From positions 12,648,001 through 12,712,000 of the forward strand of contig OZ249452.1 of assembly GCA_965235115.1 (NCBI GenBank): DNA of 64,000 bases. The letters run 5' to 3'. The DNA comes from Laetmonice hystrix. Lineage: Eukaryota. The notes beneath the pieces were generated by a model. It was not told the DNA's origin. It searched no databases and saw only the letters and a list, made by a program, of their open reading frames with translations. The position numbers and the translations under genes are program-made. Positions 7 to 33,200 of the stretch are shown here, piece by piece; position 1 is the first letter of the stretch, and each line of letters begins with the position of its first letter.

Positions 7-276
7 CCTCGACGGAAAGCTTGGCTGAAGTTTTGGTTTTCTTGTAGAAGGCGTGGTATTCCCCAACATCCTCCATGTCAGCCTTCTCAATGACGAGCCG
101 GTGAACCTTTCCGTCAGCAATGATATCGTGGTTCTCACCCCGTCTTAGTTGTTTGTCTCCACGGTACCAGTCTAACTTTAGACCAGACTTGGAGATCTCA
201 CACTCGAAGGTCACAGTCTTATTGGCCTCCGTAATCTTGATGTCTTGAAGATCGCGGGTGAATACAATTGCTTCAA
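7..276 (-). CDS. Exon: Ig domain (first Ig of super-repeat G)
   Basis: ttccag|TTGAAGCA (VEAIVFTRDLQD...KLSVEG)|gtaagt; 270 nt; missed by the ORF track. Confidence 0.88.
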
Positions 277-3200
277 CTGGAATTAGCAAAATAACTAAAT
301 ATTCAACAATCTACTTTCACCTGAGGAAACATGCGACATAACACACCTGAACTCCCAACACACTTCTACCTTTCTAGGTGCGTTTTTTTCTTTATTTGAG
401 ACGAGCTGTTAGTACCATATTTTCATCTAAGAAGAACAAAAATTTTGGATAAAAGTATTTACTCACAAATAGGGAATTTATCAAAAGAAGACTAACCCAA
501 TCCTTTAAAAAAGCGAAAATTCAAAATGATTTTCTGGTTATGCGACTTCCTATTTCCATCTTAATCCTCACAAGTCTATTGGATAATGACCTTTACTTAA
601 TCATTATGGAACCGGTACATTAAAATGTTACAAAACCCTCACCGTATTGAGCGGTTCTTGACGCCGGTGAAGCCTGTCCCTGTCCAGCCTTGTTAACCGC
701 TGCGACCCGGAACTCATACTTGCTGCCCTCCTGCAGCCCTTCGACCTTGTACTCTGTGTCCTTGACCGGTTTTGGTGTCACCTGTTCCCACTTGGCCGCG
801 CCCTCTGGCTTCATCTCCACGACGTATCCAGTGACGGGCGCGCCGCCATCTTTCTCCGGAGCGGCCCAGGTCAAGGTCGCCGTATCCTTGGTGATGTCAG
901 TGACGTCAGGAGCCCCTGGTTTCCCGGGTGCCGCGAACGGATCCTTGGCCTTGAAAACTCCTGTCGTCTGCGACGGCTTCCCGACTCCAGCCTCGTTCTC
1001 GGCACAGACGCGGTACTCATACTCGCTGCCCTCCACAAGGTCGCGGAAGGCCTGGCTGAGTGTTTCGATTGGCTGGCGGTTGACCTTGATCCAGCGCTGG
1101 CTGTAACCGGATGATTTCTCGATGTAATAACCGGTGATAGGGGAGCCACCGTCGAATGATGGTTTCTCCCAGACCAGAGTACACGATGACTTGGTTAGGT
1201 CCTCGATGTGAACGTTCTGCGGTGGACCCGGGGGGTCTGGAATCACAAACAAGCTCTAATCAGTACTTTTATTTACTAACAGCAATATCTATGTATTGCG
1301 TATTCATCAAAAGGAATGAAATCAAGTTTGAGTGATTCCATGTGTGCGTAGCACGTAATGCGTGTTTTCACTGTTTTTATTTACGCAATACGCAATACAC
1401 GTGTTTTCATTGTTTCATTGTTTTACGTGGATTTCTGGCTTAATGCTTCAAAAAAACACTTGACTCACCGAATGGCAACTTGGCCATGACTGGTTCGTCC
1501 AAGCTGACTGGCTCGCTCTGTCCTACAGCATTCACAGCTCGTACTTTAAACAGGTACTCGTTACCCTCGTACAACCTCGACACCTTGAAGGCCAAGGTGT
1601 CCGCCTCAGTCTCCCCAGCGTTCGTGAACGTTTTCCGTTTGACGTCTGCCTTCTCGATGACGTATCCCGTGATGGGAGAGTCGCCATCGTGTTCAGGGGT
1701 GTCCCAGGCGAGACTAATGTGGGTCTTGTAGACTTCAGTCACTCTCAAGTTGCGCGGTGGTGAAGGTTTACCTGAAGTAACAAAGCCAGAATTGACTCAA
1801 GAAAGTCTTAAAGGGCGAATCCAAAAGAGTTTATCCTTGCGACGTCCATCCGATTCCGACGTTGTGATTGTGATTTTGCGTTTAAAGGATGACATTCCTT
1901 TCCAGAATCAGACGGCAGCAAGCCCAGATTACAGAGTGAAGTTCCACCTTTAAATTACCTTTCTATATTTAGAATACCAAATTGAGATACCATAGAAACG
2001 TCCTTTAATACGCACCCTTGACGATGACGTCAAAGTCTGCGCTGGCTTCCCCAGCTTCGTTCGCAGCCACCACCACATATTTCCCAGCGTCCTTTGACGA
2101 CGCCCTCTTGAGGACGACCCGGGAGAATCCCTCTCCGGTCTCTATGGTGACGTCACTGCTGGCTTCGAGTTCCTGTTCTTGCAGGTACCACTTGACCTCG
2201 GGTGTTGGGACGCCAGTGATTGTGACGTTGATGGTCAGTGATCCTTTTTCCTTGACAGACTGTGGTTTCTTCAGACTAGCGTCGTAATCAATGACCGGGG
2301 CACCTGTAACCATGGATAATGAGGGAGTCCATCGGTTTAGTTTCATTGGGGAAGGACAATCTTAAATATAAGTACCTCGAGTTTTATATATAGAAGAATA
2401 AGCACAGTTACTAGTATCCCCCAACATTTTGGATAATTTTCGACTTTCTAGGGGAAACTTCTTGCATTCTTCAAGAAGGATATGAGACTTATAAAAGTAT
2501 CAGGGACTACATGAAAGCAACGTAGGCATCCTTGCAACTTTTCCGTACACATTTAATTGGGGAATGTAAAGTGGACGACCAATAAAAGACACAATGAGGT
2601 GAGATAATTGTGAACTCACTCTGAACTTCCAGTGTACACTGAGTTTCAACTCGTCCCAGTTTGTTGATAGCTTCACACCGGTACCAGCCGCCGTCACTAA
2701 CTGACGTCTCCGTGAAGTCAAGGCTCGCTGTGTCGTCATGGTAGTCGGCCTTGACCTTGCCGCCGCTGTATACCTCCTTGGATTCCTTGTACCACGTGAT
2801 CTTGGCCTTGGGGTCACCGCGGTCAAGTTCGCACTCGAGAGTGGCGCCCTCTGGCGCGATGACCACCATGTCCATCAGTGGCTCAAGAATCTTGGGCGGG
2901 TTTCCAACTGAAATACAACAAGAATACAAGGGTTAGATCTAGAAATGAAAAAACGAGAAGAAGGCTACTTCAAAAACACTATTGTAAAACTCCTTTTATC
3001 ATATGTGAGTAAGAATAAGACCGTTTCTACTTACAGATCTGTTCCTTTGCCTCGACCGGGGTAGTTGGTTCCGAGGGAGGTCCAACGCCAGCCCTGTTCT
3101 CGGCGGCGATACGGAACTCGTAGTCATTGCCCTCTTGGAGTCGTCTGACGGTATACTTGAGCTCGGAGACGTTCTGTTCGTTGGCGCGGACCCACTTGTA

Positions 3201-6200
3201 TCCGCCTTCGATACGGTACTCGATAACGTAATTAAAGATCTCGGCGCCGCCGTCGTCTGCTGGCGGTTTGTACGTCAAGGTGACGCTGTCTCTGTCGGTC
3301 TTGGCGATCTCAGGTGTGTCTGGTTTACCGGGCTTGGCTGGAGATGAAAACAAAAAAATGAAAACCAAATAAGTCCTATTCATATCAATCTTGTCAAAAA
3401 ATAAGGAACAAAGAGTCTATGGCAGAATACCAAGCCTCACTGAAAAATTACATGTCTCTTTTGTGTAAAGTGCTTTAAACGGTTGCTATGGTTGTCGCCA
3501 TGGTAACCAAATCATTACTTACACCATGGGTCCTTGGCAACAGCTGGTTTTGTCGGTGAACTTGGAGGTCCTTGGCCTACTTTGTTCACTGCCATGATCC
3601 TGAATTCATACTCGTTGTCCTCGATTAAATCGGTGACTGAGTAAGTTGTCTCCTTAACGGTTTCCCTGGTAACCGTCATCCACCGAGAACTTGATGTTTG
3701 TCTTCGTTCTATGACGTAACCCGTGACGGGAGTGCCGCCATCTTCGGCTGGTGGTTGCCATGACAACTCGGCATGGTCCTTGAAGATTTCGGTGATTTCT
3801 GGTGATTCAGGAGCTCCGGGAAGGTCTGTGAAATTGTAATGTACGCGCATGAAAAATGTTTTTACCATATTTCTCCGATTTGTAAGTTTTTAAGTATTAT
3901 CTCAACAATTTATCATCAATACATTCAGAAAATTCCCTTTACCTTGAGTCGACATGGAACATACAAGACTTTAGTGGAGAGAAAACAGATTCATTAACAC
4001 TTACCAAACTGACTCTTTGGTGTGACAGATTTAGAAAGTTCCGCAAACTCTCCCAGGCCGCATTCGTTCTCAGCAGCCACTCGGAACATGTAGGCTGAGC
4101 CCTCCTGAAGTCGTTCAACCGTTGTCTCCAGCTCCTTTGTCTTTGTCACGCTCTGCCATGTCCGTTTTCCAGGCTCGCGTTTCTCTATGACGTAACCGGT
4201 GACGTCACATCCGCCGTTGTCGTTGGGTTCGTCCCATGATAGGCTAACAGTGTCTTCCGTCACTGCCGTGACCTCAAAATCTTCTGGCGGTCCTGGTTTG
4301 TCTGAAATATTTCACAAATAAATAACGGTTCTGATGTTTGCAAAGTAATTTGGTACAATTAAAAAAATATTATAATTATAGCAAAGACTTTAGTAAGTTT
4401 GTTTCTTCCTTGTTTTTTTTATTGCTCTAAGTCAATATCTCTCCCTGCGCACTACGACCTTGACCTACTCACCAATGACCGTGACCTTGATGGTAATGGA
4501 GGCCTTGCCAAACTTGTTCTCCATGGTAACGGCGTACTTGCCGCTGTCCTTGCGGGTGACCTTGGCCATGGTCAGTGACGTCATACCAATGATGGTTTCG
4601 TCCTTGAAACGACGGGTGTCATTATATGGACCGTTGTTAAAGGTCCACTTCACCTTAGGCATAGGATTGGCACTGAAGGGAAGCCCGATGGCTGTTGAGC
4701 TACCGGCGCGTAGTATGATCTCATCCTCGATATCCTTCAGGAACATGGGAGGAGCTGCTCACAAAAACAAAACAATCTCATGAACATTGCGTTTTACTTT
4801 TTGTATATAAAACAATGTTATATATCACTGTAAAGGGGCGAAGCCATTACTGGAGGACCGTGATGTGACAATAGATGGTTATCAATGTGTTCTTAATATA
4901 TTGGCTGGAGTCCTCCTTTAAGAAAAATACAATAATTTGGAAAGTTTACCTTTAATTGTGAGGTTGGCGGTGGAGGTGACGTCCCTGAACTTGACAGAGT
5001 ACGCTCCCTCGTCCTCAACCTGCGACTCCTCTATGATGAGCGTGTGTTTCCCGTTATCTGAAGTCTTGTCGTATTTCTCCGACCTCTTGATGAGTTTGTC
5101 TCCACGGTACCAATCCGGTTTCAGATCTAGCTTGGAGATCTCACACTCAAACACAGCCTTCAGTCCGACCTGCTCCAGGTCAACGTCCTGGAGTGGTGTC
5201 ACGAAGATGATGGGCTCAACTGGAGGAGTGAAGTCAAGATCAGGTTATATACTGGGATAGGTAATAGATAATAGATAATCTCCGGTAGGGGGCGCTGTAC
5301 GCGCTCAATATCTTACAGTAGGTAATTGAGAAATAATTTGAGAGATGAACGCCCTTACCATATTTGGAGGGTAGAGATGGGTCAGACGGCGGCCCGAGAC
5401 CAGCCTTGTTCTCAGCTGTCACCCGGAACTCATACTCCGTCTCCTCCTTCAGGTCCTTGACGGTGAAGGTCAGATCAGTGACCTTGACCTCCTTATTGAC
5501 GACCTTCCACTTGATGTCTCCCGCCTGCCGCATCTCCACTGTGTAGTTAAAGATGGCAGCGCCTCCGTCACTGTCCGGAGCCGCCCAATTGATGGTAGCA
5601 GAATCTGGTTTGAGGTCTGTGACCTCTGGGCGACCTGGTTTACCAGGAAGGTCAAATGGATCCTTGGCGATGAACTGTCCACAGGTTTCTGACGGTTTGC
5701 TCACTCCGGCCGCGTTCACGGCACTGACCCGGTAGTTGTACTCCGTGCCCTCCACCAGATCGGTGAAGGTCATCTCAAGGTCGGGGATAGGGTCGCGGTT
5801 AACCTTGACCCAGCGGCTGCTGTAGCCGGAGGCTTTCTCCACGATGTAACCTGTCACTGGGGAGCCGCCGTCAAACGATGGTGGTTCCCATGACAACACG
5901 CATGACGTCTTTGTGACGTCATTCACCTGTGGGTTTCTCGGAGGATCAGGTGGATCTGAAATAGTACAATTATGGCTTACTTAACATTTTAACCATGTTT
6001 CTTTACTGAAAATGACAAATTACGCCAAATGTCTCATGAACCAAGGGGGAAATTAATCTAAATCGCATACTGGAAACATATATCACTCACCAAACGGTAA
6101 TCTGGCCTTGACTGGTTCATCCAGTTCCGTCCAATCAGAAGTACCAATGGCATTCTCTGCACAAACACGCACCATGTACGTGTTACCCTCGACCAGTTTG

Positions 6201-9200
6201 GGAACCTTGAGGGTCAGCTGATCGGCGCGCGTCTCATCGACCTTGATGAACGCTGCTCTCTTCATATCACGTTTCTCCACGGTATAACTCGTGATCTCAG
6301 ATCCTCCGTCACGCTCGGGTACATCCCATTGTACCATGACGTAATCCTTGTACACCTCAGTCACGCGCAGACTCCGAGGTGGGGATGGCTTGTCTGAAAA
6401 CGTGCAAAACGAATGTTATGAAGAGGACTAGGAGGAAGAGGGCTGAGGCACATAGTTCCCACAGTCAAAGAATCCTCCAATATTTACCTATAAGCCGAAA
6501 ATGAAAAGGCCGTCCAAACGTTCCTTGAAGTGAAGGAGGAAAAGAAGGGCTGGGTCCTATTCCAATTTTATTTTTAAGGCAGAACCTCTCATATTAAGGC
6601 ACATATTTCAGCAAAACGCCCACAGCGTATTTATTTTACATTTTTGGGGTCTAAGTCTGTCTCTGTTATAGCATGCTGTTCTATGACTACCCACCTTTGA
6701 TGACGACAGAGAAGTCCTCTGAGACACTGTCCACAACGTTCTCCGCCGTGACCTTGTAGTCTCCCGAGGTCACAGCTGACGTGCCCTTGATGGTCAAGGT
6801 TGAGAAGGTTTCGGTTGTCTCAATGGTAATGTCTTTGGTCTGTACCACTGTCTGTCCGTTATGTTGCCAGGTAACGGTCGGCATGGGGATACCAGAGATG
6901 TTGACGTGGATCACCAAGGTCGCACCGGCCTTCAAACTCTGGTCCTTCATGTTGGCATCGTAGTCGATCTTTGGTCCAACTGAGAATGAGAAATTCAAAT
7001 TTTTATATAATGCCGGCCGGTCGTCTCTCACTCCTTTCACCGAAAATAAAATACTGGACAGGATAAACTTTACGTTTTAAGCCGTACGGAGGCTTAAAAA
7101 GGGGGTGCAAGGGCGTTTGGGGGTATTTGGGTTTTTCTAAAAGCCACCTGCTTGCAAAAACGTCACTTTTCTAGAATTACTGGCGTGGAACCAATCAGAA
7201 GCAAGGGAAGAATCCATGCTAGCAAGATCTTGAGACTCACCATGGACTGTGAGTGAGGCCTCAGTGTCACAGGTACCGATCTTGTTACTCGCCGAACACA
7301 TGTAACTCCCGGCGTCTGAGGGACCGCTCTTCTTGATAGTGAGTGACGCTGTCTCCTCATCGTACGTCATGGCGTATCGGTCACTTGAACTGATTTCACG
7401 GCCGTCCTTGTGCCTGAGTAAACCCGCCAAAAATAATATCATGTCAATGGTTATCCTGACGCAGTTAAGAAGAAAAGAAGAAAATGAAAGGTCAGAAAAT
7501 TTAAGGCTTTGTACACGTTAGAAACATTTGATTTGACAACAGTTGCTGTGTCAAGTTGTTAATTGACCCACCATTTGGTTTTGGCTGTGGGTGTTCCTGG
7601 GTCGATTTCACAGGTCAGCACAGCGTCGTCAGGGGCAACAACTGTCTCATCAGTCAACTCCTCAACAATGGTCGGGGCGGTGCCCACTGAAAGTGACCAT
7701 ACAAAAAACTCTAACCCTCCACCAACATCGTCTTCTGTTTTTGATCAAATAAAGTAATCTGGGATAGTCTTTATTTTCAGTATCTTTTCATTTTGGATTG
7801 GGCTGATGCACTTCCAATGTCAGAAACTGCTTCGTTATGGAGGTTTTTGAGAGAGACTCACCGATTGGTTCCTTTGCTTGTATCTGCATGCTGTTTTCTG
7901 AACAGGGTCCAACGCCAGCCTTGTTCTCTGCGGCGACTCTGAATTCATACAACGCCTCTTCATCCAGACCTGTCATGGTGTACTTGCCCTGAGGAATCGG
8001 GCTTGTGACCTTGACCCACTTAAAGGCGCCCTCGACACGGTACTCAAGGACGTAGTTTGTGATTTCAGCTCCACCGTCATCCTCAGGTGGTGACCATGAC
8101 AACGGTATCTGGCCATCCTTGATGGCTCCGATTTTAGGAACTCCAGGCTTTCCTGGTTTCTCTGCAAGAGGCAAATCATATTTGTTAATGCCCTGTTTAA
8201 TATCAGTCCTTAAATGAACACTGATGCTATCAAATATAAAAATATATTAACTTTTTTAGGTATTGCTGGGAACTTACGCCAAGGGTCCTTAACAACAACT
8301 GGTTTTGTTGGCGAGCAAGGTGGCCCGACCCCGACTTTGTTTTCTGCCATGATTCTGTATGAGTACTCATTGTCCTCGATGACATCTGTGTCTGAGTAAG
8401 TTAACTCAGTGATGGCGTCCTTAGTGACCTTCATCCAGCGTGTTGACGTTGCCAGGCAACGTTCCACGTAGTATCCGGTTATTGGGCTTCCCCCGTCAAA
8501 CGCAGGCGGTTGCCATGTGAGTGTGACGTAATCCTTGAAGCTCTCTTCAATCTGAGGATTCTCTGGCGGCCCCGGTGGATCTGTAGACAACAAAGAGTAT
8601 GTCAAGAGAATGTGGAGATGAAGCCAAATATATCAGCATATTCCAGTAAATTTTTATCCATGACATGAACAGAATCACAGATTGTGCGTGTTGTCAGCAA
8701 AGTTGTATAGTACAGTGGGGGATCCAGGATTTTGATAAGGGGGGCCCACCTAAAAAAAAAAATTTGCCTCGCTACGCTCGGCATGATTTTGTTATGATTA
8801 TGACCATTTTGGCCCCCTTTTGGTCTATTTCAATGCTGCATGAGTTCGGCCTATGTTGCTCCTGGATGACTGAGGAGGCCCAAATTTTGGGCCCAATGTT
8901 ACTATCACGTACAATATAGGAGGCTTTTTTTAATGAATTTTGTTGGAATCCTGGTTTCAGGGTCCAAATAATGCATCTTCTTAAAAAAAGGTTGGGGAAA
9001 GGAAAATTCAAGGGGGGCCCGGGTCCCTTGGGCCCCCTGGATCCCCCAGTGTAGTACCTTGCCCAAATCTGCAGAATAAATTGTTCATTTTTTTAGTAAA
9101 GCTTACCGTGTGGGCTTTTCGCTGTTACTGCTTGCGACAGTTCGGCAAATTCTCCAACTCCGACCTCGTTCTCGGCGGCGACCCGGAAGAGATAGCTGGT

Positions 9201-12200
9201 ACCCTCCTTGAGGTCAGCCACTAGATACCCCAGGTCCTCCGACGTGGCGCCCTTCTTCCACTGACGTTTTGACGCGTCACGTTGTTCCATGACGTAACGT
9301 AAGATCTCGCAACCTCCGTCATCCTCCGGGATGTCCCATTTGAGACCCACGGTGGATTCGGAGACGCTCGTTACGGCTAGGTGGGTCGGAGCGCTTGGTT
9401 TGTCTAAGGGAAGAACACAATGAAATGCTTATTTGGACTACTGCAGGTATCTTTTATTTCGCGCGTGTGCTTAATTTCGCAGTTCGTAACCTGTTGCTCT
9501 TACCCTCAAATACTATCTGTTGCAAGTGCCTGTTAGAATTGCATGTTGGGGAATTAATTCTGTCTTTCACTTTTTTGATGGAGATGCCATTGTCCAAACG
9601 CCAATTTAGGAAGTGCCAAACCAGCGAAAATGAATGTTAATTCCGCCAAATTAAAGTGACTTAAAATATTTTAAAGATTCATGACATCATCTATCATGTA
9701 GTATATAATATTAAGCTGTCTTCAGGATGCCTTAGTCAGCAGCTTTCTATTAAAAGCGCCAGTTTAGGCTGACAAAGGGTTACCCTTGCTCACAGCTGAA
9801 CTGGGTCAACCCCCTATATCAACATTAAGGAATACCTGTTGTGTCATTCTCAGTTCTGCACATATACAATGTACTATTGTTGTGCACCTTTAATTAAAGG
9901 CTCGCCAGACGAAAATAATCCGCTGGGTGACATAAGAAAGCTTTGAGGGGTTTAATTTTATGGTTTAACTTGGAGCGTTTTAACAATGCCAAACAATTGC
10001 TGTGTGCCCAATCTGCTGGACGACAGATGAAAGCTTTGAGGTTATTGTCATATCTCTATTATTTTGTAGCGTTTCAACAATAGCGGCAGGACGGCCATTG
10101 TCACACAATGTCTCCAACCCCTTGTATTGTTTGGACAGCTGGCTGTCTGAGCGCCGGGATGTCAAGGTGCCAGTCACGGTCAATGAGCACCTAGCTGCCA
10201 ACGCGTCTGCCACACTAATGAGCATACCTGGCACTGCCCGTCAGTTAAAGTATAATTAACACCTTAATCTCTCGCGAGCTGTCAATAGACAGTTTTAACC
10301 AATGGCCGGGCAGCATCGCTTTCTTTGACGTCATTGGTCAATTGACATCATCCTCGCCTATATATACTCAGTTCTGAGAGGCATTCAGACATTACACTGC
10401 ACCTGGCTTGGTTCGCCATGACTGGCACCCAGTCACTGGCCACGGACACTGGAACTGTTAGCCGGACATAACGTCTGGTTTAATTCATCTGCTGCTAAAA
10501 GTACCACCTTTAGCGGAACTTCCACCACTCTGGACAAGAACTCGGTGAGTGTCAATTTGACTCAGAACTTTGAGATGCACTTTGAATCCCATTTCCTTCA
10601 GCTAAACTGCATTTGGAACCAACCGTTTATTTTAATATTTGCTATGCGTGATATGTGCACGCATACTTACCCTTAACGATGACCTTGATAGTCAATGACG
10701 CAGAGCCGTAATCGTTCTCCAAGGTGACCTTGTAGTTACCGGAGTCCGACCTGACGACCTTGGCCATCGTCATAGAGGTCATCCCATAGATGGTTTCGTG
10801 CTTGATCCTCTTGACGTTCGGCATGCTGGGTTTACCATTGTATGTCCACTTCACGTCAGGCATTGGGTTGGCCGAGAAAGGCAGCTCAATGGCCGTCGAC
10901 TGACCAACGTTCAGGCGTAAAATGTCCTCACGATCTTCGAGGAACTTTGGTGGAGCTGTAGCGCGGAATAGCGATTTTTTTAGTTTCAATTTTAAAAAAA
11001 TTTGCTTTCGCCTATATTTACCGTGACAGATTCTATTGCATGAGACAATATTTCAAAACTATCAAATAATCTAATGTTATGTAGGGAGAAGCCACATATA
11101 AGTCAATATTTTCATTGCGGAAAACGAGATAGATGCAAAAACTTCTATGTATATAAGTCCAGAACTCACCATGGATGGTCAAACTTGCTGATGATTTGAC
11201 CTCAGCCTCCTTAAAGATCACAGAGTAGGTTGCCTCATCTTCAGCGTATGCCTTCGGGATTGTGAGTTTGTGAGTTGTTGTTGCAGAAACAATCTCATAT
11301 TTGTCACTTGGTTTGAGAAGTGAGTCACCCTTGTACCATTCTGGCTTGAGTCCAGCCTTGGAGATCTCACACTCAAAGGTCGCCGTCAGGCCAACGTCAT
11401 CCAAAGTCACATCTTCCAGTGGAATCAGGAAGCTGATTGCCTCAACTGAAATTTGGGTTTGAAGAATGTAGTTTTAATTTATGATTTGATATAAGAAATC
11501 GCTGAACTATTGTAAGCAGTGCTTCCCACCCGGCAAAGTAAATTCATGTGGTCAATTCTGATATGTGAGGCCTCTGTTGGATTTTATTTACACAAGGTTT
11601 AGTTGCTTTATTGCAGCTCCAATGCCTTTTTTATTATAAAATGCATTGCAGAAAATACAACAAAGGTATTTACATTCAAAAATGCATCCAAATTTGAATG
11701 GGACAAGTTGTTCTATTTAGAACGAGAAAAGACCGTACACTCACCATATTTGGCTGTCTTAGAAGGTTCTGATGGTTCTCCTGGGCCAGCCTTGTTTTCA
11801 GGCGTCACCCGGAACTCGTACTGAGTCTCTTCTTTCAGGTCAGGAACCTCGTATGTCAGATCCGTCACATCCTCCTTGTTCACTCTCTGCCACCTCTTCT
11901 CTCCAACAACCCTCTTCTCAATGATGTAGTTTGTGATCGGAGATCCGCCATCACTGTCTGGGGGTTGCCAGGTGATGGTTGCCATGTCCGCCGTAATTTC
12001 CTCCACATCTGGGCGGCCGGCTTGACCGGGTTTGTCAAACGGATCCTTGGCGACAAAGCTGATAGGGGCACACGGGCTACCCTGGCCTGCATCGTTCTCA
12101 GCGAACACCCTGTACTCGTAGGTGGTTCCCATGTCAAGGTCATCCAAGGTGATAGTTGTCTCTTTCTGGGCCTTCTTGAATACCTTCACCCAGCGAGATC

Positions 12201-21200: not shown

Positions 21201-24200
21201 TTAATATAATATTATTGCTTCAAAACTGGTTTACTTCATTGTGCACGCTAGGAAAATTTACGTAATGTAGTAAAATGCCCTTTATATATCAAGGGGGATA
21301 AAGATGGAGCATATTCAGAGAAATAAGAGAATATGTGTACCGTATTTGGCTGTTTTTGAAGGTTCTGATGGTTCTCCTGGGCCAGCCTTGTTTTCAGCCG
21401 TCACCCGGAACTCGTACTGAGTCTCTTCTTTCAGATCAGGAACCTCGTATGTCAGATCCGTCACATCCTCCTTGTTCACTCTCTGCCACCTCTTCTCTCC
21501 AACAACCCTCTTCTCAATGATGTAGTTTGTGATCGGAGATCCGCCATCACTGTCTGGGGGTTGCCAGGTGATGGTTGCCATGTCAGCCGTAATTTCTTCT
21601 ACCTCTGGGCGGCCGGCTTGACCGGGTTTGTCAAACGGTTCTTTGGCGACAAAGCTGATAGGGGCACATGGGCTACCCTGACCTGCATCGTTCTCAGCGA
21701 ACACCCTGTACTCGTAGGTGGTTCCCATGTCAAGGTCATCCAAGGTGATAGTTGTCTCTTTCTGGGCCTTCTTGAATACCTTCACCCAGCGAGATCCAGA
21801 CTTCCTCTCCACGTAGTAACCAGTGACTGGAGAGCCACCGTCAAACTCTGGCGGTTCCCAGGTCAGAACGGCTGACTCCCTCGTCACGTCCACTGCCTTC
21901 AGGTGTATCGGAGGTCCAGGTGGGTCTAAAATACCGAAAGTATCCACATCACTTAACTCTAGGACTTCAAGCATGAACATTTTGGCGCCAACAGCATCCA
22001 TCGTATTTTTCTTTTAGGGCTGAATATTACGGGGTTGGGTATCATGTTTCTTGAATATGGTTATGGGCAGTGACCCAGAAGGTGAATCAGGAGTTTGGGG
22101 GCTGAGAATTTGTGCCTAATATTATGATAAGAGATCGAAGAAACAGGAAAGTATCGTCCACACTGGGGTAAGGATATACAAGAGGTGTTGCTCACCAAAC
22201 GGCAGTTTGGCTGTAACTGGCTCAGCAGTAGCTGTGGGGTCACTCTCGCCAACTGCATTGACTGCCTTCACTCTGAACAAGTACTGGTTGCCCTCAACCA
22301 GTTTCGTGACCTTGAAGTTCATCTCAGTGTCCTTGACCTCACCGGCCTTGACCCATGCCTCACGCTTGACGTCACGTCGTTCCACGATGTAACCAGTGAT
22401 CGGAGAACCCCCGTCACTTTCAGGTTTGTCCCATGCTACGACGATGAAGTCTTTGTAAACTTCCGTGGGGCGAACATTTTGTGGTGGTGAGGGGCGATCT
22501 AGAAACCAGAATTGAGACATTTAGATATGTGGCAATACAAGGAATGTTGTATAATGAAGCCTGACTTCCTTAATAATGTTTCATAGTATATCAACCAAAA
22601 AACTTCCGAAATTTTGACAAAATCTCAGCGTCCTTCCGTACCTTTGACTGTGACTGTGAATTCAGCACTGTCGTCACCAGCGACATTTTCAGCCATGACC
22701 TTGTACAGACCAGCGTCCACCGCTTCAACATCCTTGACAGTCAACCTTGACGAGTTCTCTTTGGTTTCAATTGTGACGTCATCACCAGATTCAAGGACGT
22801 CATCATCCTTGTACCACGTGACTGTAGGAGTTGGCGTTCCTTTGACATTGACGGGAAGGGTCAAGGTCGCACCTCCCTTCAGGGCCTGTGTATCTTCATA
22901 CTTGTCATCATAAGTGATTTCAGGTGACACTGAAACCGCAAACATTTACAGTTACCCCTCATCTTTCAGATAACATCAGTCATACATCCATACTGCAATC
23001 AGAATTTATCATGAAAATGCATACGTACCATGTACAATGAGGTTACAACTTGTCTCCACCTTGCCCAGCTTGTTACTGGCCTCACACTTGTAAACCTGTT
23101 CGTCCTTGGGCCCAACCGTTTTAATGGTCAGAGTGGCCACCTCATCCTTGTAGATCATCTTTATTCGTTTGTCGGCTGTTATTTCCTTGGAGTTTCTGAA
23201 CCTATAAAACAGAAACCAAGTTTGTTTTAGACTCTTTGTTAAAACATATGCATACTTTCCGACTTAACTCTACCAATTATCGTAGTCTAAAGTAGAAACC
23301 TAGGAGTTGTCTTAAACAGTACTCACCATTTTATCTTTGCAACAGGGTCTCCTGGAGCGATAGAACACTCAAGAGTCGCCGTGTCTAGAGAAACGACAGT
23401 CTGGTCCTCCAAAGGTTTGATCAACTCCGGTGGATGGCCGACTGCAACAAATATACATGCATATTAAACATCTAAACGCTGAAGCAACATAACACGAATT
23501 AAATGAGAGAATTAAATGTCGTTAAACAAGTATTTGACACAATATCTGATCAGAGGTCCGCACACAGAACATACTTCCGGAAGATTAAAAAAATATCTTT
23601 TCTTTGAAATGCATGTAGACATAAAAGCACGAAGTTAAAGACATTTACCGATGGGTTCCTTCAGAGTGACCGGTGGGTCACTTGGGTCAGACCATGGTCC
23701 CTGTCCAGCCTTGTTGACGGCTGCCACGTGGAACTCGTAGGTGATGCCCTCACCCAGTTTGGTGGGTTTGTATTCTGGCTTGTCTGTCTTGGTGTCAGTG
23801 GTGACGGTTGCCCACATCAATGTTCCTTCAATACGGTGTTCGACAACATAATGCGTGATGGGCGAGCCACCGTCATCCTGTGGGGACTCCCAGTTCAGCT
23901 GCACGGACCGGCCCCGGATGTCACTACATTGGGGTTGGCCAGGTTTCCCTGGTTTTTCTGCAAGTTAACCACATTCTCGATTTATAACACGATGAAGACT
24001 GCAACTCACTGATACAATTCTTCTGGGCCTTAAACAAATGGCACCTAACTTGAAAATGGTAACTTCACTTTAATGTAAACGTGAAAAAAAGGTTACTGAC
24101 CTAAGATAATTCATTCTGAGGAAAGAAATAATTTGATATGGTGGTCCTTAATGCCTCTGGTCACAGATTGTCGGGGTATATATACTTACCATAAGGGTCC

Positions 24201-27200
24201 TTTGCAGTGAACGGTTTGGTTGGAGAACTTGGCGGACCAACTCCAACCTTGTTTTCGGCCATCACCCGTAGTTCATACTCGGTGCCTTCAATAAGGTCAG
24301 TCACCTTCAGTTCAAGGTCAGTCATGATCTCCTTGGTAACCTTTATCCAGCGAGAACTGGCTGTGTCACGACGTTCCACATGGTATCCAAGGACGGGAGA
24401 GCCTCCATCAAACGCTGGTGGTTGCCATGTAAACATGCAGGTCTCCTTGGTAACGTCAGAGACTTCTGGAGATTGTGGTGGACCTGGTGGGTCTGTGACA
24501 AATAAATAAAGGTAAAGTCAACATTTGCAATAATTATGTTGTCCTCACAAAATAATGTTACAAATGGCAGCCATCAACTATTTGTAATAATATTACCGTG
24601 CACCCAACACAATTGTTAATTGCTTAGTCTATGAAAAATTAAACTTTTATTAGAAAGATTTGCCAGGCCTTGGAAATCTGATGGGTTGAAAAAAAACTCA
24701 CCATATGGACTCTTACAGGTGACCGGATCCTTAAGTTCTACAAAAGGTCCGACTCCACACTTGTTCTCAGCCGCCACACGGAACACATACTCTTTGTCCT
24801 TGATCAGCTTTGTGGCTTTGTAATCTAGGTCAGGAGAGGTCATCTTGTTACCCCAGGTGCTGCGTGATTTCTCACGTTTCTCCAGTACATATTGAGTAAT
24901 GTCACATCCTCCATCGTCCTCCGGCTCCTCCCACTTCAGACTCACTGTCGACTCACTGTACTCAGTTACAGCCAGCTCACGAGGAGCACTTGGTTTGTCT
25001 GGCGCAGATTGAAAATAAATGTATAAGTCATGGTTTCCAAGTAATAATATGGATTTTGTAACATAAATGAAATAAACAATGTATCATTATGCAAAACAAA
25101 GATTAAACTTAAAATGTAGACTTTATTTTGTATTTTGCCAGAATGTTTCTTTACTTATACCAGGAGTACAAACTTTATGTGAGGAAGCAGTGGTTTCTGG
25201 TACTCACCGATGACTATAACCTTGACGGTAAGGGTGCACTCTCCATACGGGTTCCTGACGGTAACATTGTAATCACCGCTGTCAGACCTGACAACTTTTT
25301 TCAGACGCAGACACGTCATGCCATATATGGTTTCCTCCTGGAACCGTTTGTCAGAGATTGGCGCGTCCTTGAACGTCCATTCTACATCCGGCATTGGATG
25401 AGCATTGAAGGGAAGTTCCATGACGGTTGCCGCTCCCACTTTAAGCGTTCGGACGTCTTCAAACTTCTCAAACGTCCACGCAGGCGGAACTAGAAACCAA
25501 AAATAGATGTGTTTATTTTACAAATGCAAGGTACACTATATACCTTGGAAAATTTGTGCGTCTTCTGTCAAATTTCTTCCAAAGTAAAGAGAACTCCTAC
25601 CTTTGACTGCCAGGTTAGCCGTGGATTCGACGCCTTCCTCGAAGAAAATAGTGTAGTCATCTTCATCCTCTCCGATGACGTCATTAATGACCAGACGATG
25701 TTTTCCACCATCCACTGAGATCTTGTACTTTTTGTCAGCAGAGATTGGTTTTCCTCCCCTGCGCCATTCAGCTTTCATGTTCTTCTTGGAGATCTCACAC
25801 TCAAATGTCACTGTACCGGGGATCTCATCGACCTCCTGGTCTTCCAGAGGAATTAGGAAGTCAATCGGCTCATCTGGAAGTTAAGAGGAATCATAAGTTT
25901 CAAAAGAGAAATCCTATACCACATGAAGTTTTGCGATGTCACTATATTAGACGTTTAGGCATTAATTTTTTACGTTACTCTATAAACTTTACATAGAATC
26001 ATTATAACGATAATGCCAAGAATGAGCAGCCTAAAGTTTTGTTTTCGAAGGGCCACACTGCCTTCCTTACCGTATTTTCTTGGCAGAGACGGGGGCGAGA
26101 ATGGACCAACGCCCGCTTTATTTTCTGCGGCTACTCTGAACTCGTACTCCTTCTCAGTCACCAAACCAGACACGGTAAAGCTTAATTCAGACACAGTCTT
26201 GCCCTTGCTGCCCTGCTTCCACGCTTTATCACCATGGAGACGGTATTCGATGACGTAGTTGAAGATTTCGGCACCGCCGTCGTTCTCTGGCGGGGTCCAA
26301 GTGATAGTGGCATCATCGGCCGACATTTCAGTGACCTCAGGGCGACCTGGAGCCTCGGGGACGTCTACAATAGATACAGTAAGGTCAGCGTACCAGTGAG
26401 CATCCTATTGCAGGGCGGTCAGATACAACAGGCAAATCTCAAAAACAAGAACAGAACATCCATAGGGGTTAAGTAAGAAAATGTTTGTGTCTCACAAACA
26501 AGGGGTCCGGATCCCCTCACTACACTAGTGGCCGTCTGCAAGAACATTTTGTGAAGTTAATTCCAAGAATGGCTTAACTTAGTATCTATCCTAGATTTAA
26601 GGTTGTTTAATGGAATTCTTTTGTGCTTGGCCAGCGAAATAAGGGCCAGTCTCCAAGAATGAGAAAAGGCTAGAAAATTATGACTTTCTGGCAACTGAAA
26701 ATATGTGTAAATCCACAGATTTAGTTAATCTTGAGATTAACTATGTCCTTGCAGTTTAATGTTACTTGATATCAAATAATTTGGTATCACAAGAGTAACC
26801 CCTACTCTGCCCCTGGTCAATGCTCCAATACGGTTATTTAGCAGTGTAAAGTGTTTGTTATGATTGGTCTTACCAAATGGATCCTTGGCAATGATGCTGA
26901 TTGGCTCACAGGGCTCGCCCACGCCTGCAGCGTTCTCTGCGGCGACCCTGAACTTGTACTCGGTGCCCTCCTCAAGGTCACTAATCTCCAAGGTCAGCTC
27001 CGAGATGACCTTCTTGTTGACCTTAGACCAGCGGGAGCTGTAGGACGCCATGCGTTCGACGTAGTAACCTGTGACCGGACTGCCACCGTCTGACTCAGGA
27101 GGTTCCCAAGTCAGGACAGTCGATTTCTTGGTCGTATCATTGGCCGCCAGGTTGATGGGTGGACCAGGCTTATCTGTAAAAGAGACAGCATCGGGTAAGT

Positions 27201-30200
27201 CAAGGATTTGCATCTCTAGGTTTGATATTTGTATTAGGAAGGCAACGGGGGTATTTTCACGGTCCTGGTGATGAAAATATCCAAAAAAATATCTTAACAT
27301 GGCTACTATCCTCTCTGTGCAAAGGAGAACAAATTCCCTTTGTATCTTTATTTATCAATACAAAGGTGATTATCATTATTTATCATCATTCATGGAAGGA
27401 AAAGAATTAAACTGTTTTGCGTAACTAAAATATAAACTACCTCATTTCGGTACAGAATATGGTACAATTATTGTCTTGGACGTACCGTAGGGAAGTTTAG
27501 CTGTGACTGGTTCGTCCATTTCGCACGGGTCACTGACGCCAATGGCGTTTTCAGCGACGACCCGGAAGTAGTACTGATGACCTTCGACCAGCTTGGTGGC
27601 CTTGATGGTCAGCGTGTCGGCGGTCGTGTCACCGACCTTGGTCCACGTGTTCTTGGTGGCGTCCCGTTTCTCCACCTTGTAGCCTCGGATTGGTTCTCCA
27701 CCGTCGTCCTCGGGGGTTTCCCAGGCAACCACGATGAAGTCCTTGAAGTACTCGGTGGCGTGAAGGTTACGTGGAGGCGACGGCCGGTCTGAAACCAATC
27801 AGATGCGCGCAGATTTAAAGGATACCCTTCCTTAAAGGATAACCTTCCATAAAAGATCATTTTCCGTAACAGACTGTCAGACAATATATCTTGCGCATCC
27901 CATCTGTTTCTAGCCTACAGTGCAAAGTCTTCCTTTCTCCATAATCCCCCTAATCGACCTAATCTACCATGGGCTGTGACCAGTCTCACCTTTAACAGCG
28001 ACATTGAAGTCAGCCAAGGCAGACCCGACCACGTTTTTGACGGTCAGGTTGTATTTGCCGGTGTCTTTAGTTGAAGCCTCCAGGATGGTGACCCGGCTGT
28101 AGGTGGCGTTCGACTCGATGAAGACGTTGTCAGACGGTATGAGAGTGACGTCGTCAAGCGTCCACGCTACTGATGGTTTAGGAACGCCACTGATCTTGGT
28201 GTCAATGGTGACCTTTTTACCGCCTTTGACCTGGATTGTGTCCTTGAGTTCGTCAGCGTAGTCGATTGTCGGGTGTACTGCAAGGTGAGGAGGTTGGATA
28301 TTCATGAGGAGAGAGTATCTAAAGTAGATTATTGTTTCACTTTTGTAGTACCGGTAGATCTAAAATTATCATCTTTCTGTCCGTCTTTCAAAAGATGGTT
28401 ACATAATCAATATCATTCAATGTTGTTGTCATTCAATGACTCGGCATTTATTTCCGCTCATTGAATGGGTCAATATTTCCCTCGATGACTCAGCACTAAA
28501 ATATCCGTTCATAGACAAAGTTGCAATGTTTAAAATGCTGCCAACATAACGCTGAGTCAGCATTCAATGGTCAATCCCGCCCACCAAACGCTGAGTCAGC
28601 ATTCAATGGTCATTCCCACCCACATAACACTGAATCAGCATTCAATGGTCCCCACCTACATAACGCTGAGTCAGCATTCAATGATCAATCCCACCCACAT
28701 AACGCTGAGTCAGCATTCAATGGTCAATCCCACCCACATAACGCTGAGTCAGCATTAAATCCATCTTACCATGTACAGTGAGTATGGCGTCACTCCTGAC
28801 TTCACCCAGTTTGTTAGACGCCTCTACACGGTAGTCCGTGGCGTCACTCGGTTCGCACTCGATGACCTCTAGCTTTGCCACATCCTCTTGGAGGGAAATC
28901 TTGTGCTTGTCGTTATCGTGGATCTGAACTCCTGCCTTGAACCATCGAATCTCAGCGGCCGGTTCACCGAGGTGCATGCGGCATAGGAACTCGGCATTGG
29001 AAGGCGAAACAACGGTCAGATCAGAGATAGGCTCGAACATCTGCGGCGCGTCTCCCACTGCGAGAAGGCAAAGAGCATTTGGTTAGTATGACGTCATTTT
29101 ATGGAATTATCACATAAATATTGGAGGTCTAGTGTTCAGCCTGGAGCACAAAACTAGGGCTAGTTGACTAACGTCTCTACCGTTATCATGTAGGCCTTTA
29201 TCATAGTTCGTAATTAGACATTGGCCTTTTTACATGCAATGCTATTATGTCATCCATTAGCAATACAAGTAAATTATGTTTGACTGAATAGAAAACTAAC
29301 CAACGAGGGTTTTCACTGGTTCGCTTGGGTCGGAATACGGCCCAAGTCCAGCTTTGTTTTCTGCAGCGACGCGGAACTCGTAGTATGTGTCCTCAGTGAG
29401 ACCCTTCACGGAGTATTTGGTATCGGGGCATGTTTCATCCTTCTGATATTTCTCCCACTTGGGAGTGCCCTGGATTCGGAACTCGATCTCGTAATTGACA
29501 ATTTCTGCTCCTCCATCAGACTCAGGAGCAGTCCATTCAAGATCAACAGTGTGGCCTGTTACATTGCTTGTTTCTGGGCGCCCAGGTTTTCCTGGTTTCT
29601 CCCATGGATCCCTGGTTGTGATTGGCTGCGATGGCGGGCTGAATTCTCCAATGCCTGCCTTGTTCTCGGCGGCAACGCGGAACTCATACTCATTGGCTTC
29701 GACCAGTTCGGTGACGTTTAGTACGAGCTCTGTGATTGGCTCCTTGTTAACGCGCAGCCAATGCTTGCTGCCGACAGTCCGGCGTTCCAGGTGGTAGCCG
29801 GTGACTGGAGAGCCGCCATCTTCGGTTGGTGGTTGCCAGGATACCAAACAGTTGTCAGAGAAGATGTCGCTGACAGTTGGTGCATCTGGGGCCCCAGGGA
29901 CAGCTGCAAAAAGCATAAGATATACATATTTTGTATATACTAACTTTAACTGCTTTCTGAATTTTTCAACACTGAAATATTAAAGAGGATGCATGGATTT
30001 CAGGGGATACCCTCAAGTACATACAGTTAGTGGACTCCTCTGTAATCGTTATAATGGACACACATAGCATGTGTGCATAGCTGTGGATAGGTAACCTAAA
30101 TGTAAACAATACAGTTATAATGCTGATGTTACATACTGTATGGATGCTTGGCCACCACAGGTTCCGTGGTCTGTACCGGTTCGCTGACGCCGTACTGGTT

Positions 30201-33200
30201 CTCGGCCGACACCCTGAATAGGTATTCATTGCCGTCGATCAGTTTGGGTACAGTGAAGGCCAGTTCTGTGGTTTTGCCTGCTTCCTTCCACGAGCGCCGG
30301 TTCACGTCCTTGACCTCGATGACGTAACCCGTCACGGGACTGCCTCCGTTGTCTTCCGGTTCCTCCCAGGTCAAGTCGGCGCTCTCCGCCGTGATGGCGA
30401 CTACGTCCAGGTTCCGTGGTGGTGAGGGTTTGTCTGTGGTGGGTGGGGGAATTGTTCCGGAATAGTTATTTATGCATGTATGTAATTGTTCTTGGTACCT
30501 GTTCCCCTTGTGTCACTACTGACCAAGAGAGATGAACAAGACAATTCGTATATTACAAAGCTAGGGTCCCTCCCGTGGTTAAGCCAAGAATTTACATATT
30601 TTTGAGGGAGTCGCCCAGTCATGCTAGCTGAATCTAGGTGAGCGCCATCCACCTTATATAATTGTTCATATAAAAGATTTAGTTTAATATCCATTTTGCT
30701 TTCCATAGTCAAGTTAATATGCCACTTTTTCCCTAGCATATGCAATGGCCCTTCCCCAGCCTCCCTAGCCTTTTTGAAATTCTCGATCCCACACTGGATA
30801 AGTCCTCTGGCCCACGAGAAGAAACGACAAGTACGTACCAAGCACCACCAACTTGATGAGCATCGTCGCCTCCCCAAACTCGTTACTCAATGTCAGCGTG
30901 TACTCGCCAGCGTCCGTTCTCTCCGCGTCGTGGATTTCAAACGTCGTCTTGTTGTCGACCGTGGTCGGTTTGATGCGTTCCCCGTCTGGCACGTCTCCGC
31001 CGTCGTTGTAGGTCAATGAGACGCTCGGTTGTGGGTACGCCGTGAAGGGCATCTCTCTTGTTGCAGAGCTTCCAGCTTTCATGATTATCGTGTCCTCAAA
31101 CGAATCATCCAGGACGAACTTGGGGCCAGCTGAAAGATACAAATCATAGTTAGTGTTGCATATATGCTACATCTTGAACCGCTTAAAGGTAACGTTCAGC
31201 CAGTGTATATAATCTATTGTCTTACTTGTAAGGGATTGGCAATGCTATCATGTAGTATTGGTATATACAGATGAATCCTGGTTGCTAACTGAGTAGTAAC
31301 TTCTGTTTAAAAAAAACTTGAAACCTACCCTCAACCAAAATCTTGGCCGTTGAGGTTTTGCCCCTGGCGATTGCGGTGTAGTTGCTTATATCATCGCCAG
31401 TCGCCTCGTTGATGGTCAGCCGATGGACAGCGCCGTCGGCCACTGTGACATACTTGTTACTGGGCAGGATGGCTTCCTTCCCACGCTGCCACTGGACCTT
31501 GACGTTAGCCTTGGTCAGTTCGCATTCAAACGTCACATAGCCTGGGATCTCTGTCAGGCGCTGGTCTTGTAGGTGACGCACAAAATCTACAGGCTCTTCT
31601 GCAATGGACATCATTGTTTGTTACTATTGTGGCATTCCACTAAATATTGGTTAGTAAAATATTCATGCTTAATACGCCCCCGATTACGCCTCCCTTTATT
31701 GAAACAGATCTTCTTTTTTTAACATTTTAGTAAAGTCAAAAATGATGCTGTACCTTCCACATAGACAGTGGCGGCTGATTTCTTCTCGCCGATAACAATG
31801 GTGTATTCAGCCTGGTCGTCGAGGTGTGCATCCTGGATGATAAGCGTGTGTATTGTTCCTTCAACCCTGATCTCGATCCTGCCTGCCGTTGGCCGGACCT
31901 CCTTGCCTGCCTTCAGCCAGGTGGCTGTCTGGTCAGGTTTGGAAACCTCACAACTCAACGTGGCAGTCTCAGTCTCCATTACTTCAACGTCACTCAGTGG
32001 AGTCAGGAATTCCAAAGGCTCCTCTGTTGGTAACAAAATGGCAGTTTAATTAAATAGATGTTTTTTTTAAATTACAGTTATTACTTAGGCCCTATTAAGG
32101 AAACAGTACAGTTGCAAGGTTTGTCTCAAGACAATGTCAAGTTTCACCCCCCCCCACCCCCTTTTTTTTGGGGGGGGGTACGAATGCATTCTTTGCACAA
32201 TCCCTTAAACCAACCTTCCCAGTCGTGTGTAAAGCAGTAAAGATACAATCAAATGAATGTTACTAACCGAGGACGGTGAGTTTTGCCGATGTCTTTTTAT
32301 CGCCGATGGAGCAGGAATATTTCATCGTGTCCTCCAGCTCGGCGTCGACGATGGTCAGGCGGTGTACGGTACCGTCCACCTCCGGTGTGAACCGTGTGAA
32401 CTCGGCCCCGCTGATCTCTGTACCTGCCTGTAACCATCGAGCCGTCTGGTCGGCCTTGGAGACTTCGCACTCGAATACTGCGGTCTGTTTCTCGTAGATC
32501 TCAAGGTTGGACAAAGTCCGGACAAATTCTACTGGGAGCTCTGGCAAGGAAATCAAGGTATTGAATGAAATAATGACGTTCCAGTGTTACCTACAGTAAA
32601 ATAAGCGTCAGTACCGACTACATGTAGTATAGCCTACATCTAATATAGACATAAAAAAGGCATATACAACGTATTATTCTACGTAGTATGATTTTTGTCT
32701 GCGACGGTTAACTATAATAATTATACAATGTATATTTTATCGGCACGAAGTGAATATGGTGCCTAAGTAGTATAGTAAAAGTAAGAATTGCAAGGGGTTG
32801 TCAGCTATATCAAGGTGGAAACCAGGTGCAATGTGTGAACTCGGGGAACCACACTGGAGTAAAGAATGAAGAGAGGCAGAGATATACGGTGCTAACCTTC
32901 AACAGTGAGTTTGGCTGTACTCTCTACTCCTTCTTCCACCACAATGGTGTATTTTGATTGGTCGTCCAGCTGGCATTCCCGGATGGTCATCAGGTGTTTG
33001 GTTCCCATGGAAACCATTTCGAAACGACCTCCGGTCTTAATTTCCTGTTCGTCCTTGAACCATTTGACCTTGAGGCTGTCCTTACTGATCTCACACTCAA
33101 AGGTCGCCTTCTCCAGTTCTTTGACCTTCTGGTCCGTCAAGGGCTTCAGGAACTCTGCTGGAGCCTCTGTTTGAAGGGAATAATTTAAAATTCAGAAACA

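Follow-up and report, generated by a model that had tools for sequence, protein, structure and literature searches.

Gene structure and expression

In the present study, we analysed a stretch of 64,000 nucleotides (nt) of the Laetmonice hystrix genome (contig OZ249452.1, here C29, positions 12648001-12712000; hereafter the window), whose minus strand carries a large part of a giant titin-type gene. Coordinates refer to the window unless C29 is named. All long domain-bearing open frames within 1-34000 lie on the minus strand, and 7-31598 holds six complete units of the order (Ig-Ig-Fn3-Fn3-Fn3)x2, named A to F, and the first exon of a seventh. This composition had been proposed in an earlier note on the same DNA, and the domain string, the Pfam matches and our gene model agree with it, down to the same end coordinates 7 and 31598. 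The 120 kb below the window were modelled in the same manner, and the complete array consists of ten units of ten domains each (Ig-Ig-Fn3-Fn3-Fn3-Ig-Ig-Fn3-Fn3-Fn3), with 975-987 amino acids (aa) per unit; positions 7-31598 form the first 60% of the A-band-type segment. Across the extended gene, the open frame runs without a stop for 11,751 aa and 120 domains. Ig and Fn3 hidden Markov models (HMMs), trained on the Pfam-typed exons of this gene, give the domain string IIII+(IIFFF)x20+II+Fx14 (I, Ig; F, Fn3).

The gene model was obtained by splice-aware dynamic programming on the minus strand, using codon log-odds and GT/AG scores. Three acceptors, first set too far upstream, were moved by comparison with the paralogous units, and in 3 of 3 cases an AG was present and the frame was kept. 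The model reproduced exactly the summed exon lengths reported earlier for units A to F (Table 1). Pfam I-set and fn3 were assigned to exons of units A and B, and in unit B each exon has a match except the first half of Ig-6. The exon chain is mostly of phase 1-1, usually with one domain per exon. Intron positions vary by unit, as had been stated before: Fn3-4 and Fn3-5 are fused in A, Fn3-9 and Fn3-10 are fused in B-F, and Ig-6 is split by an intron in B-E and unsplit in A and F.

Spliced contigs of run X4 skip eight predicted unit B introns at their GT..AG ends and also join exon 1 to exon 2, which makes 9 junctions; these contigs are not attributable to one copy, given the 98% identity among B, C and D. 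The contigs of runs X1-X3 carry intron sequence and were excluded as RNA evidence. The titin-type gene is expressed, since the spliced contigs confirm its exon structure. One X4 joint, which "goes back 4641", might be read as a back-splice, and was taken instead as a contig of unit C or D placed on the near-identical unit B. With phase 1-1 exons, skipping of most single domains, or of any whole unit, would preserve the frame; the exceptions to this phase, in 7-33658 and below the window, are split domains, including some unit J exons. No exon skipping was seen in the few RNA-type contigs.

The units are flanked by the other parts expected of a titin. The four Ig domains directly upstream of unit A classify with unit position 1 by margins of 29-40 bits, and this set marks the I-band/A-band-type junction. 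I-band Ig exons occupy 31754-47000 and 51358-63730 of the minus strand. A single low-complexity exon of 1,022 aa lies at 47932-50997 on the same strand; its P+E+V+K content is 45% (K 18%, P 12%, D 12%, E 11%, S 11%), it carries short repeats of the 'KDxP/SKD' type, its sole Pfam match is a weak one to Extensin, and it is probably a PEVK-like spring. On the other side, unit J is followed by Ig-Ig and 14 Fn3 domains, and further downstream the minus strand holds unique sequence and a lone Fn3, then Fn3-Ig-Ig-Fn3, the kinase exons and more Ig. Of four kinase-region exons tested, three match Pfam Pkinase (L009:3146-4070). Judged by its domain order, the overall layout of I-band Ig/PEVK-like, A-band-type and kinase parts is that of titin/connectin.

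Table 1. Units of the array and adjoining parts of the gene (window coordinates; C29, contig coordinates)
Feature	Coordinates	Strand	Size	Remarks and evidence
Four single-exon I-band-type Ig domains	31754..33658	-		Directly upstream of unit A; gene model, position HMMs
Unit A	26071..31598	-	9 exons, 2934 nt, 978 aa	First in gene direction; gene model, Pfam I-set/fn3, position HMMs and trees
Unit B	21341..25873	-	10 exons, 2928 nt, 976 aa	Leads the near-identical tandem trio B-D; gene model, Pfam, 8 introns confirmed by X4 contigs
Unit C	16520..21121	-	2928 nt, 976 aa	Acceptor corrected to 17104; gene model
Unit D	11745..16300	-	2928 nt, 976 aa	Acceptor corrected to 12329; gene model
Unit E	5359..11445	-	10 exons, 2934 nt, 978 aa	First half-exon of Ig-6 placed at 7572-7686 (115 nt)
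Unit F	643..5219	-	9 exons, 2928 nt, 976 aa	Gene model, PDB search with Fn3-9/10 exon
First Ig exon of unit G	7..276	-		Gene model
Units G-J	C29 12618200-12648276	-	G 2934, H 2925, I 2940, J 2961 nt	
Ig-Ig and 14 Fn3	C29 12609396-12617654 (L007:1396-9654)	-		Directly after unit J; unbroken Fn3 run, mostly one exon each
Kinase-region exons	C29 12590569-12592577 (L009:2569-4577)	-		Preceded by Fn3-Ig-Ig-Fn3

Position identity within the unit

The position analysis was performed on eight units (A, B and E-J). The six window copies are not independent observations: B, C and D are young duplicates, and only four of the six are independent because these three are 98% identical in their exons. When each domain was compared with those of the other units, its nearest neighbour shared its position of ten in 75 of 80 cases and its position of five in 78 of 80. 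Among Fn3 domains, the mean identity was 47-51% at the same position, 42-44% five positions apart and 32-40% in other pairs; the corresponding values for Ig domains were 38-45%, 25-26% and 16-21%. The per-position domain phylogeny had been set beforehand as a test, and in the maximum-likelihood trees the domains do cluster by position. For Fn3, the position-of-10 label requires 5 changes and the position-of-5 label 2; for Ig, these figures are 3 and 1, and each of the four is the minimum possible. The unit label requires 42 changes for Fn3 and 28 for Ig. Positions five apart are sisters in these trees. Since the position labels need only the minimum of changes, the 10-domain unit appears to be an old duplicated 5-mer, and the position-of-5 result likewise bears out the three Fn3 classes and the 5-mer base module described in the earlier note.

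Domain length is also kept by position. Over the ten units, position 8 has 101 aa in 10 of 10, position 3 has 99 aa in 9 of 10 and position 4 has 101 aa in 9 of 10, and this constancy by position accounts for the constant total of the unit.

Units B, C and D stand in tandem with a period of 4.75-4.86 kb. Their exons are 98% identical (2% difference) and their introns 88-92%, with indels. The introns of C are 92% identical to those of B, and the ratio of nonsynonymous to synonymous substitution rates (dN/dS) for this pair is 0.10, while D gives 0.05-0.12 against B and C. Synonymous divergence (dS) is ~0.07 within the trio, dN/dS spans 0.05-0.12, and all frames are intact. From these substitution patterns, B/C/D can be regarded as a genuine lineage-recent triplication under purifying selection. 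The copy number is thus evolvable, with a recent gain of two units.

Known titin-type arrays and relatives in other genomes

The best PDB matches were two super-repeat chains from the C-zone of human cardiac titin, 8g4l_bm (1084 aa) and 8q6t_I (1079 aa), and titin C-zone chains were also the top PDB match of the Fn3-9/10 exon of unit F. Similar to the vertebrate titin A-band, the segment is a linker-free Ig/Fn3 array between I-band Ig/PEVK and a C-terminal kinase, it is composed of tandem super-repeats with domains conserved by position, and the Ig-Fn3-Fn3-Fn3 modules, the Fn3 class order and the SPY/DPW/EPI-type junction motifs are alike. However, the worm period is 10 domains instead of 7 (D-zone) or 11 (C-zone), and the C-zone order Ig-Fn3-Fn3-Ig-Fn3-Fn3-Fn3-Ig-Fn3-Fn3-Fn3 differs from (Ig-Ig-Fn3-Fn3-Fn3)x2. 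In the worm, a second Ig precedes every Ig-Fn3-Fn3-Fn3 module, and the domain string of units A-J contains no Ig-Fn3-Fn3 module. The worm unit has ~977 aa versus 1079-1084 aa in vertebrates, there are ten units of which three are recent duplicates, and the domains are mostly single phase 1-1 exons, unlike the giant exons of vertebrates.

Vertebrate repeats are derived from Ig-Fn3-Fn3(-Fn3) modules (PMC10665226). When vertebrate Ig-Fn3-Fn3-Fn3 modules were scored with the annelid position HMMs, their Ig always fell in class 2 or 7 and never in 1 or 6; the first Fn3 was of class a (positions 3/8) in 43 of 57 modules, the second of class b (4/9) in 55 of 57, and the third of class b or c. This suggests that each 5-mer corresponds to a titin-type Ig-Fn3a-Fn3b-Fn3c module with one Ig added in front. 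The position 1 Ig resembles the I-band Ig of the same gene and the position 6 Ig resembles the first Ig of the pre-kinase Ig pairs in twitchins and titins; because the score margins are small, these resemblances and the origin of the 5-mer that they suggest are a lead only.

Twitchin and projectin are also invertebrate thick-filament-type Ig/Fn3 proteins with a kinase, and their pre-kinase Ig pair classifies with unit positions 6 and 7, but their Ig-Fn3-Fn3 repeat has 3 domains compared with 10 here. The kinase lead-in is Fn3-Ig-Ig-Fn3 in the worm gene and Ig-Ig-Fn3-Fn3-Ig-Ig-Fn3 in twitchins and vertebrate titin. The genome contains a second giant gene, on the minus strand of contig C11 (4708001-4768000; L021-L026), with the twitchin/projectin pattern IFF, IFFF ... 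IIFF-IIF and the end ...IFFIFFFIIFFIIF. Since this separate twitchin-type gene exists, the titin-type gene is not a twitchin orthologue. Comparison of the domain strings thus supports the earlier statement that the pattern is unlike the vertebrate 7- and 11-domain repeats and the Ig-Fn3-Fn3 repeat of twitchin/projectin. Myomesin and M-protein share the local string Ig-Ig-Fn3-Fn3-Fn3, but in a single non-repeated arrangement, in an M-band protein of ~1,500 aa with a much weaker sequence match. Taken together, the present gene and the gene on C11 fit a statement in a paper that draws 'mixed' titins of lophotrochozoans (PMC12063666), whereas its text gives no super-repeat pattern or period, 10-domain unit, 5-mer origin or conservation. 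In the open-access literature searched, the (Ig-Ig-Fn3-Fn3-Fn3)x2 super-repeat was not described in a titin, and literal matches to related strings were found only in myomesin and in the titin pre-kinase P-zone.

The strong matches to the Ig-Ig-Fn3 exon within this genome all lie inside this gene. Among named proteins, the best relative of this exon in unit I is the Ridgeia piscesae (annelid) protein "Titin" (53% identity), and another protein reaches 85%. Contigs of three further assemblies (L018, ENA; L019, NCBI GCA_022702875.1; L020, ENA) carry one-to-one orthologues of units G/H to J and of the region that follows, with a per-domain identity mostly of 45-70%. By this orthology, units G-J should predate the split from these three other worm genomes. 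After curation, unit H measures 2925 nt here, 2925 nt in L019 and ~2928 nt in L020, where frameshift errors make the length approximate; unit I measures 2940 nt here, 2937 nt in L019 and 2934 nt in L018. Free variation of unit length among orthologues, for which we had looked, does not occur, because the lengths of H and I are nearly unchanged.

A variant array was found in an ENA metagenome (L016; ERZ23486787 scaffold_2190:1-18506). It is almost intron-free and comprises at least 6 units of the order Ig-Ig-Ig-Fn3-Fn3-Fn3-Ig-Ig-Fn3-Fn3, in which positions 1-9 classify one-for-one with positions 1-9 of the present unit and an extra position-1-like Ig stands in place of Fn3-10. The unit spacing is 966-974 aa, and 987 aa across one open reading frame (ORF) break. 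A tree built to compare the history of amplification in L016 and in this genome had long branches and no resolved grouping.

Among the best 150 representatives of 1.84 billion proteins, there was no full-length protein with this pattern; the fragments P0031 and P0054 and the variant P0016/P0034/P0113 were found. The other types in this set were vertebrate titins (IFFIFFFIFFF), twitchin/projectin (IFF)n and obscurin-like Ig runs. The locus of P0031 (L017; Logan SRR8185553 contig 787:1-16840) encodes 31 Ig, a single 10-domain unit, Ig-Ig and 14 Fn3; its ORF ends after the 14 Fn3 and is followed by unrelated called genes, with no kinase seen there. The L017 unit groups with unit A (support 96/96) on a long branch. 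The Ig-Ig + Fn3x14 tail is common to the present gene and L017/P0031, and Fn3 runs of 15-18 occur in the hemichordate 'twitchin-like/titin-like' proteins P0028 (Ptychodera) and P0006 (Saccoglossus).

A proposed periodic scaffold and its alternatives

Position-specific conservation with fixed lengths is the signature of the vertebrate arrangement, and for this reason we consider it probable that the segment forms an A-band-type periodic scaffold in a lophotrochozoan titin, lying along the myosin/paramyosin thick filament. According to this proposal, a titin-type Ig-Fn3a-Fn3b-Fn3c module would have gained an extra Ig in front to give the 5-mer, which would have duplicated and diverged into the 10-mer. 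The 10-mer would then have been amplified in tandem, with G-J as old units and B/C/D as a recent triplication. Each of the ten positions would keep its sequence identity and its length, as in the vertebrate C-zone, and the segment along the filament would offer binding sites at a fixed axial period.

The vertebrate 11-domain unit, which spans ~43 nm, corresponds to the myosin/MyBP-C repeat (PMC10665226). By scaling from this value (43 nm per 1079-1084 aa), the worm unit would span ~39 nm; at 4.35 nm per domain, it would span 43.5 nm, equal to three 14.5-nm crowns. We put forward only tentatively that the 10-domain unit is a template matched to the annelid (lophotrochozoan) thick-filament period. 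Ten domains in place of eleven would then realise the universal 43.5 nm (3 x 14.5 nm) repeat, or the period would be a distinct one of ~39 nm, and the length of a particular filament zone would be adjusted through the number of units (8 to 10 via B/C/D). On this proposal, titin-type rulers would go back to the bilaterian ancestor, with a period that differs by lineage. Glycera, a polychaete, has thick filaments of ~3 µm (PMC2107334); since the segment would reach only ~0.45 µm, it is unlikely to act as a ruler for the whole filament in such muscle, and a template for a defined filament zone is more plausible.

Several results weigh against a scaffold of matched period. The ~116 A-band-type domains would cover, by scaling, about a third of a polychaete half-filament of 1.5 µm. 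Unit J has 987 aa, 9-12 aa above the other units, and one unit of the L016 array has ~888 aa (~85 aa short). The constancy of unit length described in the earlier note stands for the window units (976-978 aa) and is not strict beyond them. The same note had called the length conservation "compensated"; when per-position lengths were shuffled among units and the variance of the unit totals was compared, equally tight totals were obtained and no compensation was found (p = 0.20 for the four independent window units, 0.24 for A, B and E-I, and 0.77 with J added). The copy number changed recently in B/C/D, unlike the fixed vertebrate C-zone. Lastly, the super-repeats and the kinase ~55 kb downstream are joined on one transcript in the gene model only.

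Some of these results would be expected if the constant unit length were passively inherited, with no ruler or periodicity constraint, in which case the segment may still bind the filament without a matched period. Ig and Fn3 folds are of fixed size, the units share a common ancestor and some are young duplicates, with B, C and D 98% identical in exons; the shuffled lengths (p 0.20-0.77) and the deviating units J and L016 agree with this explanation. However, position identity and length are kept across units that are only 38-51% identical, and lengths are kept across species at ~45-70% identity. The L016 variant swaps an Fn3 for an Ig and yet keeps ten domains and ~973 aa, and vertebrate titin shows such position-specific constraint where a matched period has been demonstrated. 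We regard passive inheritance as a possible but rather unlikely explanation.

It is quite improbable that the modules act off the thick-filament shaft, as a myomesin-like cross-linker or an extensible I-band element. Myomesin starts with Ig-Ig-Fn3x5 (PMC3279349), myomesin chains are among the PDB matches, and the position 1 Ig domains resemble the I-band Ig of this gene. On the other hand, titin C-zone chains score 529-534 bits compared with 90-110 bits for myomesin (MyBP-C is far lower too), an Fn3-rich linker-free part between I-band Ig/PEVK and the kinase is in the A-band place of titins, and known elastic segments are without Fn3 domains (PMC10665226). That the repeated units, chiefly the three near-identical exon copies of B/C/D with their regular period of 4.75-4.86 kb, are an assembly artefact or non-functional duplicates is hardly credible, given introns that differ by 8-12% with indels, exons that differ by 2% with dN/dS of 0.05-0.12, intact frames throughout and spliced contigs covering the unit.

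The case for a protein template of thick-filament architecture rests mainly on the A-band super-repeats of titin, which to our knowledge have been known in detail only from chordates so far. A protostome titin with another period and equal conservation by position, shared by several worm genomes and accompanied by a 10-domain variant with one domain type swapped, offers a natural comparison, and the template hypothesis gains a second, independent test case. If the period matches the annelid filament repeat, the template idea generalises; a mismatch would mean that super-repeats conserved by position can arise without a ruler. With regard to titin evolution, a protostome titin-type gene with I-band, A-band-type and kinase parts occurs alongside a separate twitchin-type gene.

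Two minor observations concern the remainder of the gene. Unit G contains two long introns, of 6.6 kb (C29 12635340-12641967) and 2.5 kb (12644470-12646992), while most introns in the other units have 0.1-0.8 kb. Within the I-band part, the minus strand at 51358-55575 and 56302-63730 holds tandem arrays of near-identical single-Ig exons, with six copies at a 761-bp period and then a series of greater divergence at ~530-650 bp; these I-band Ig arrays (51358-63730) are young duplications.

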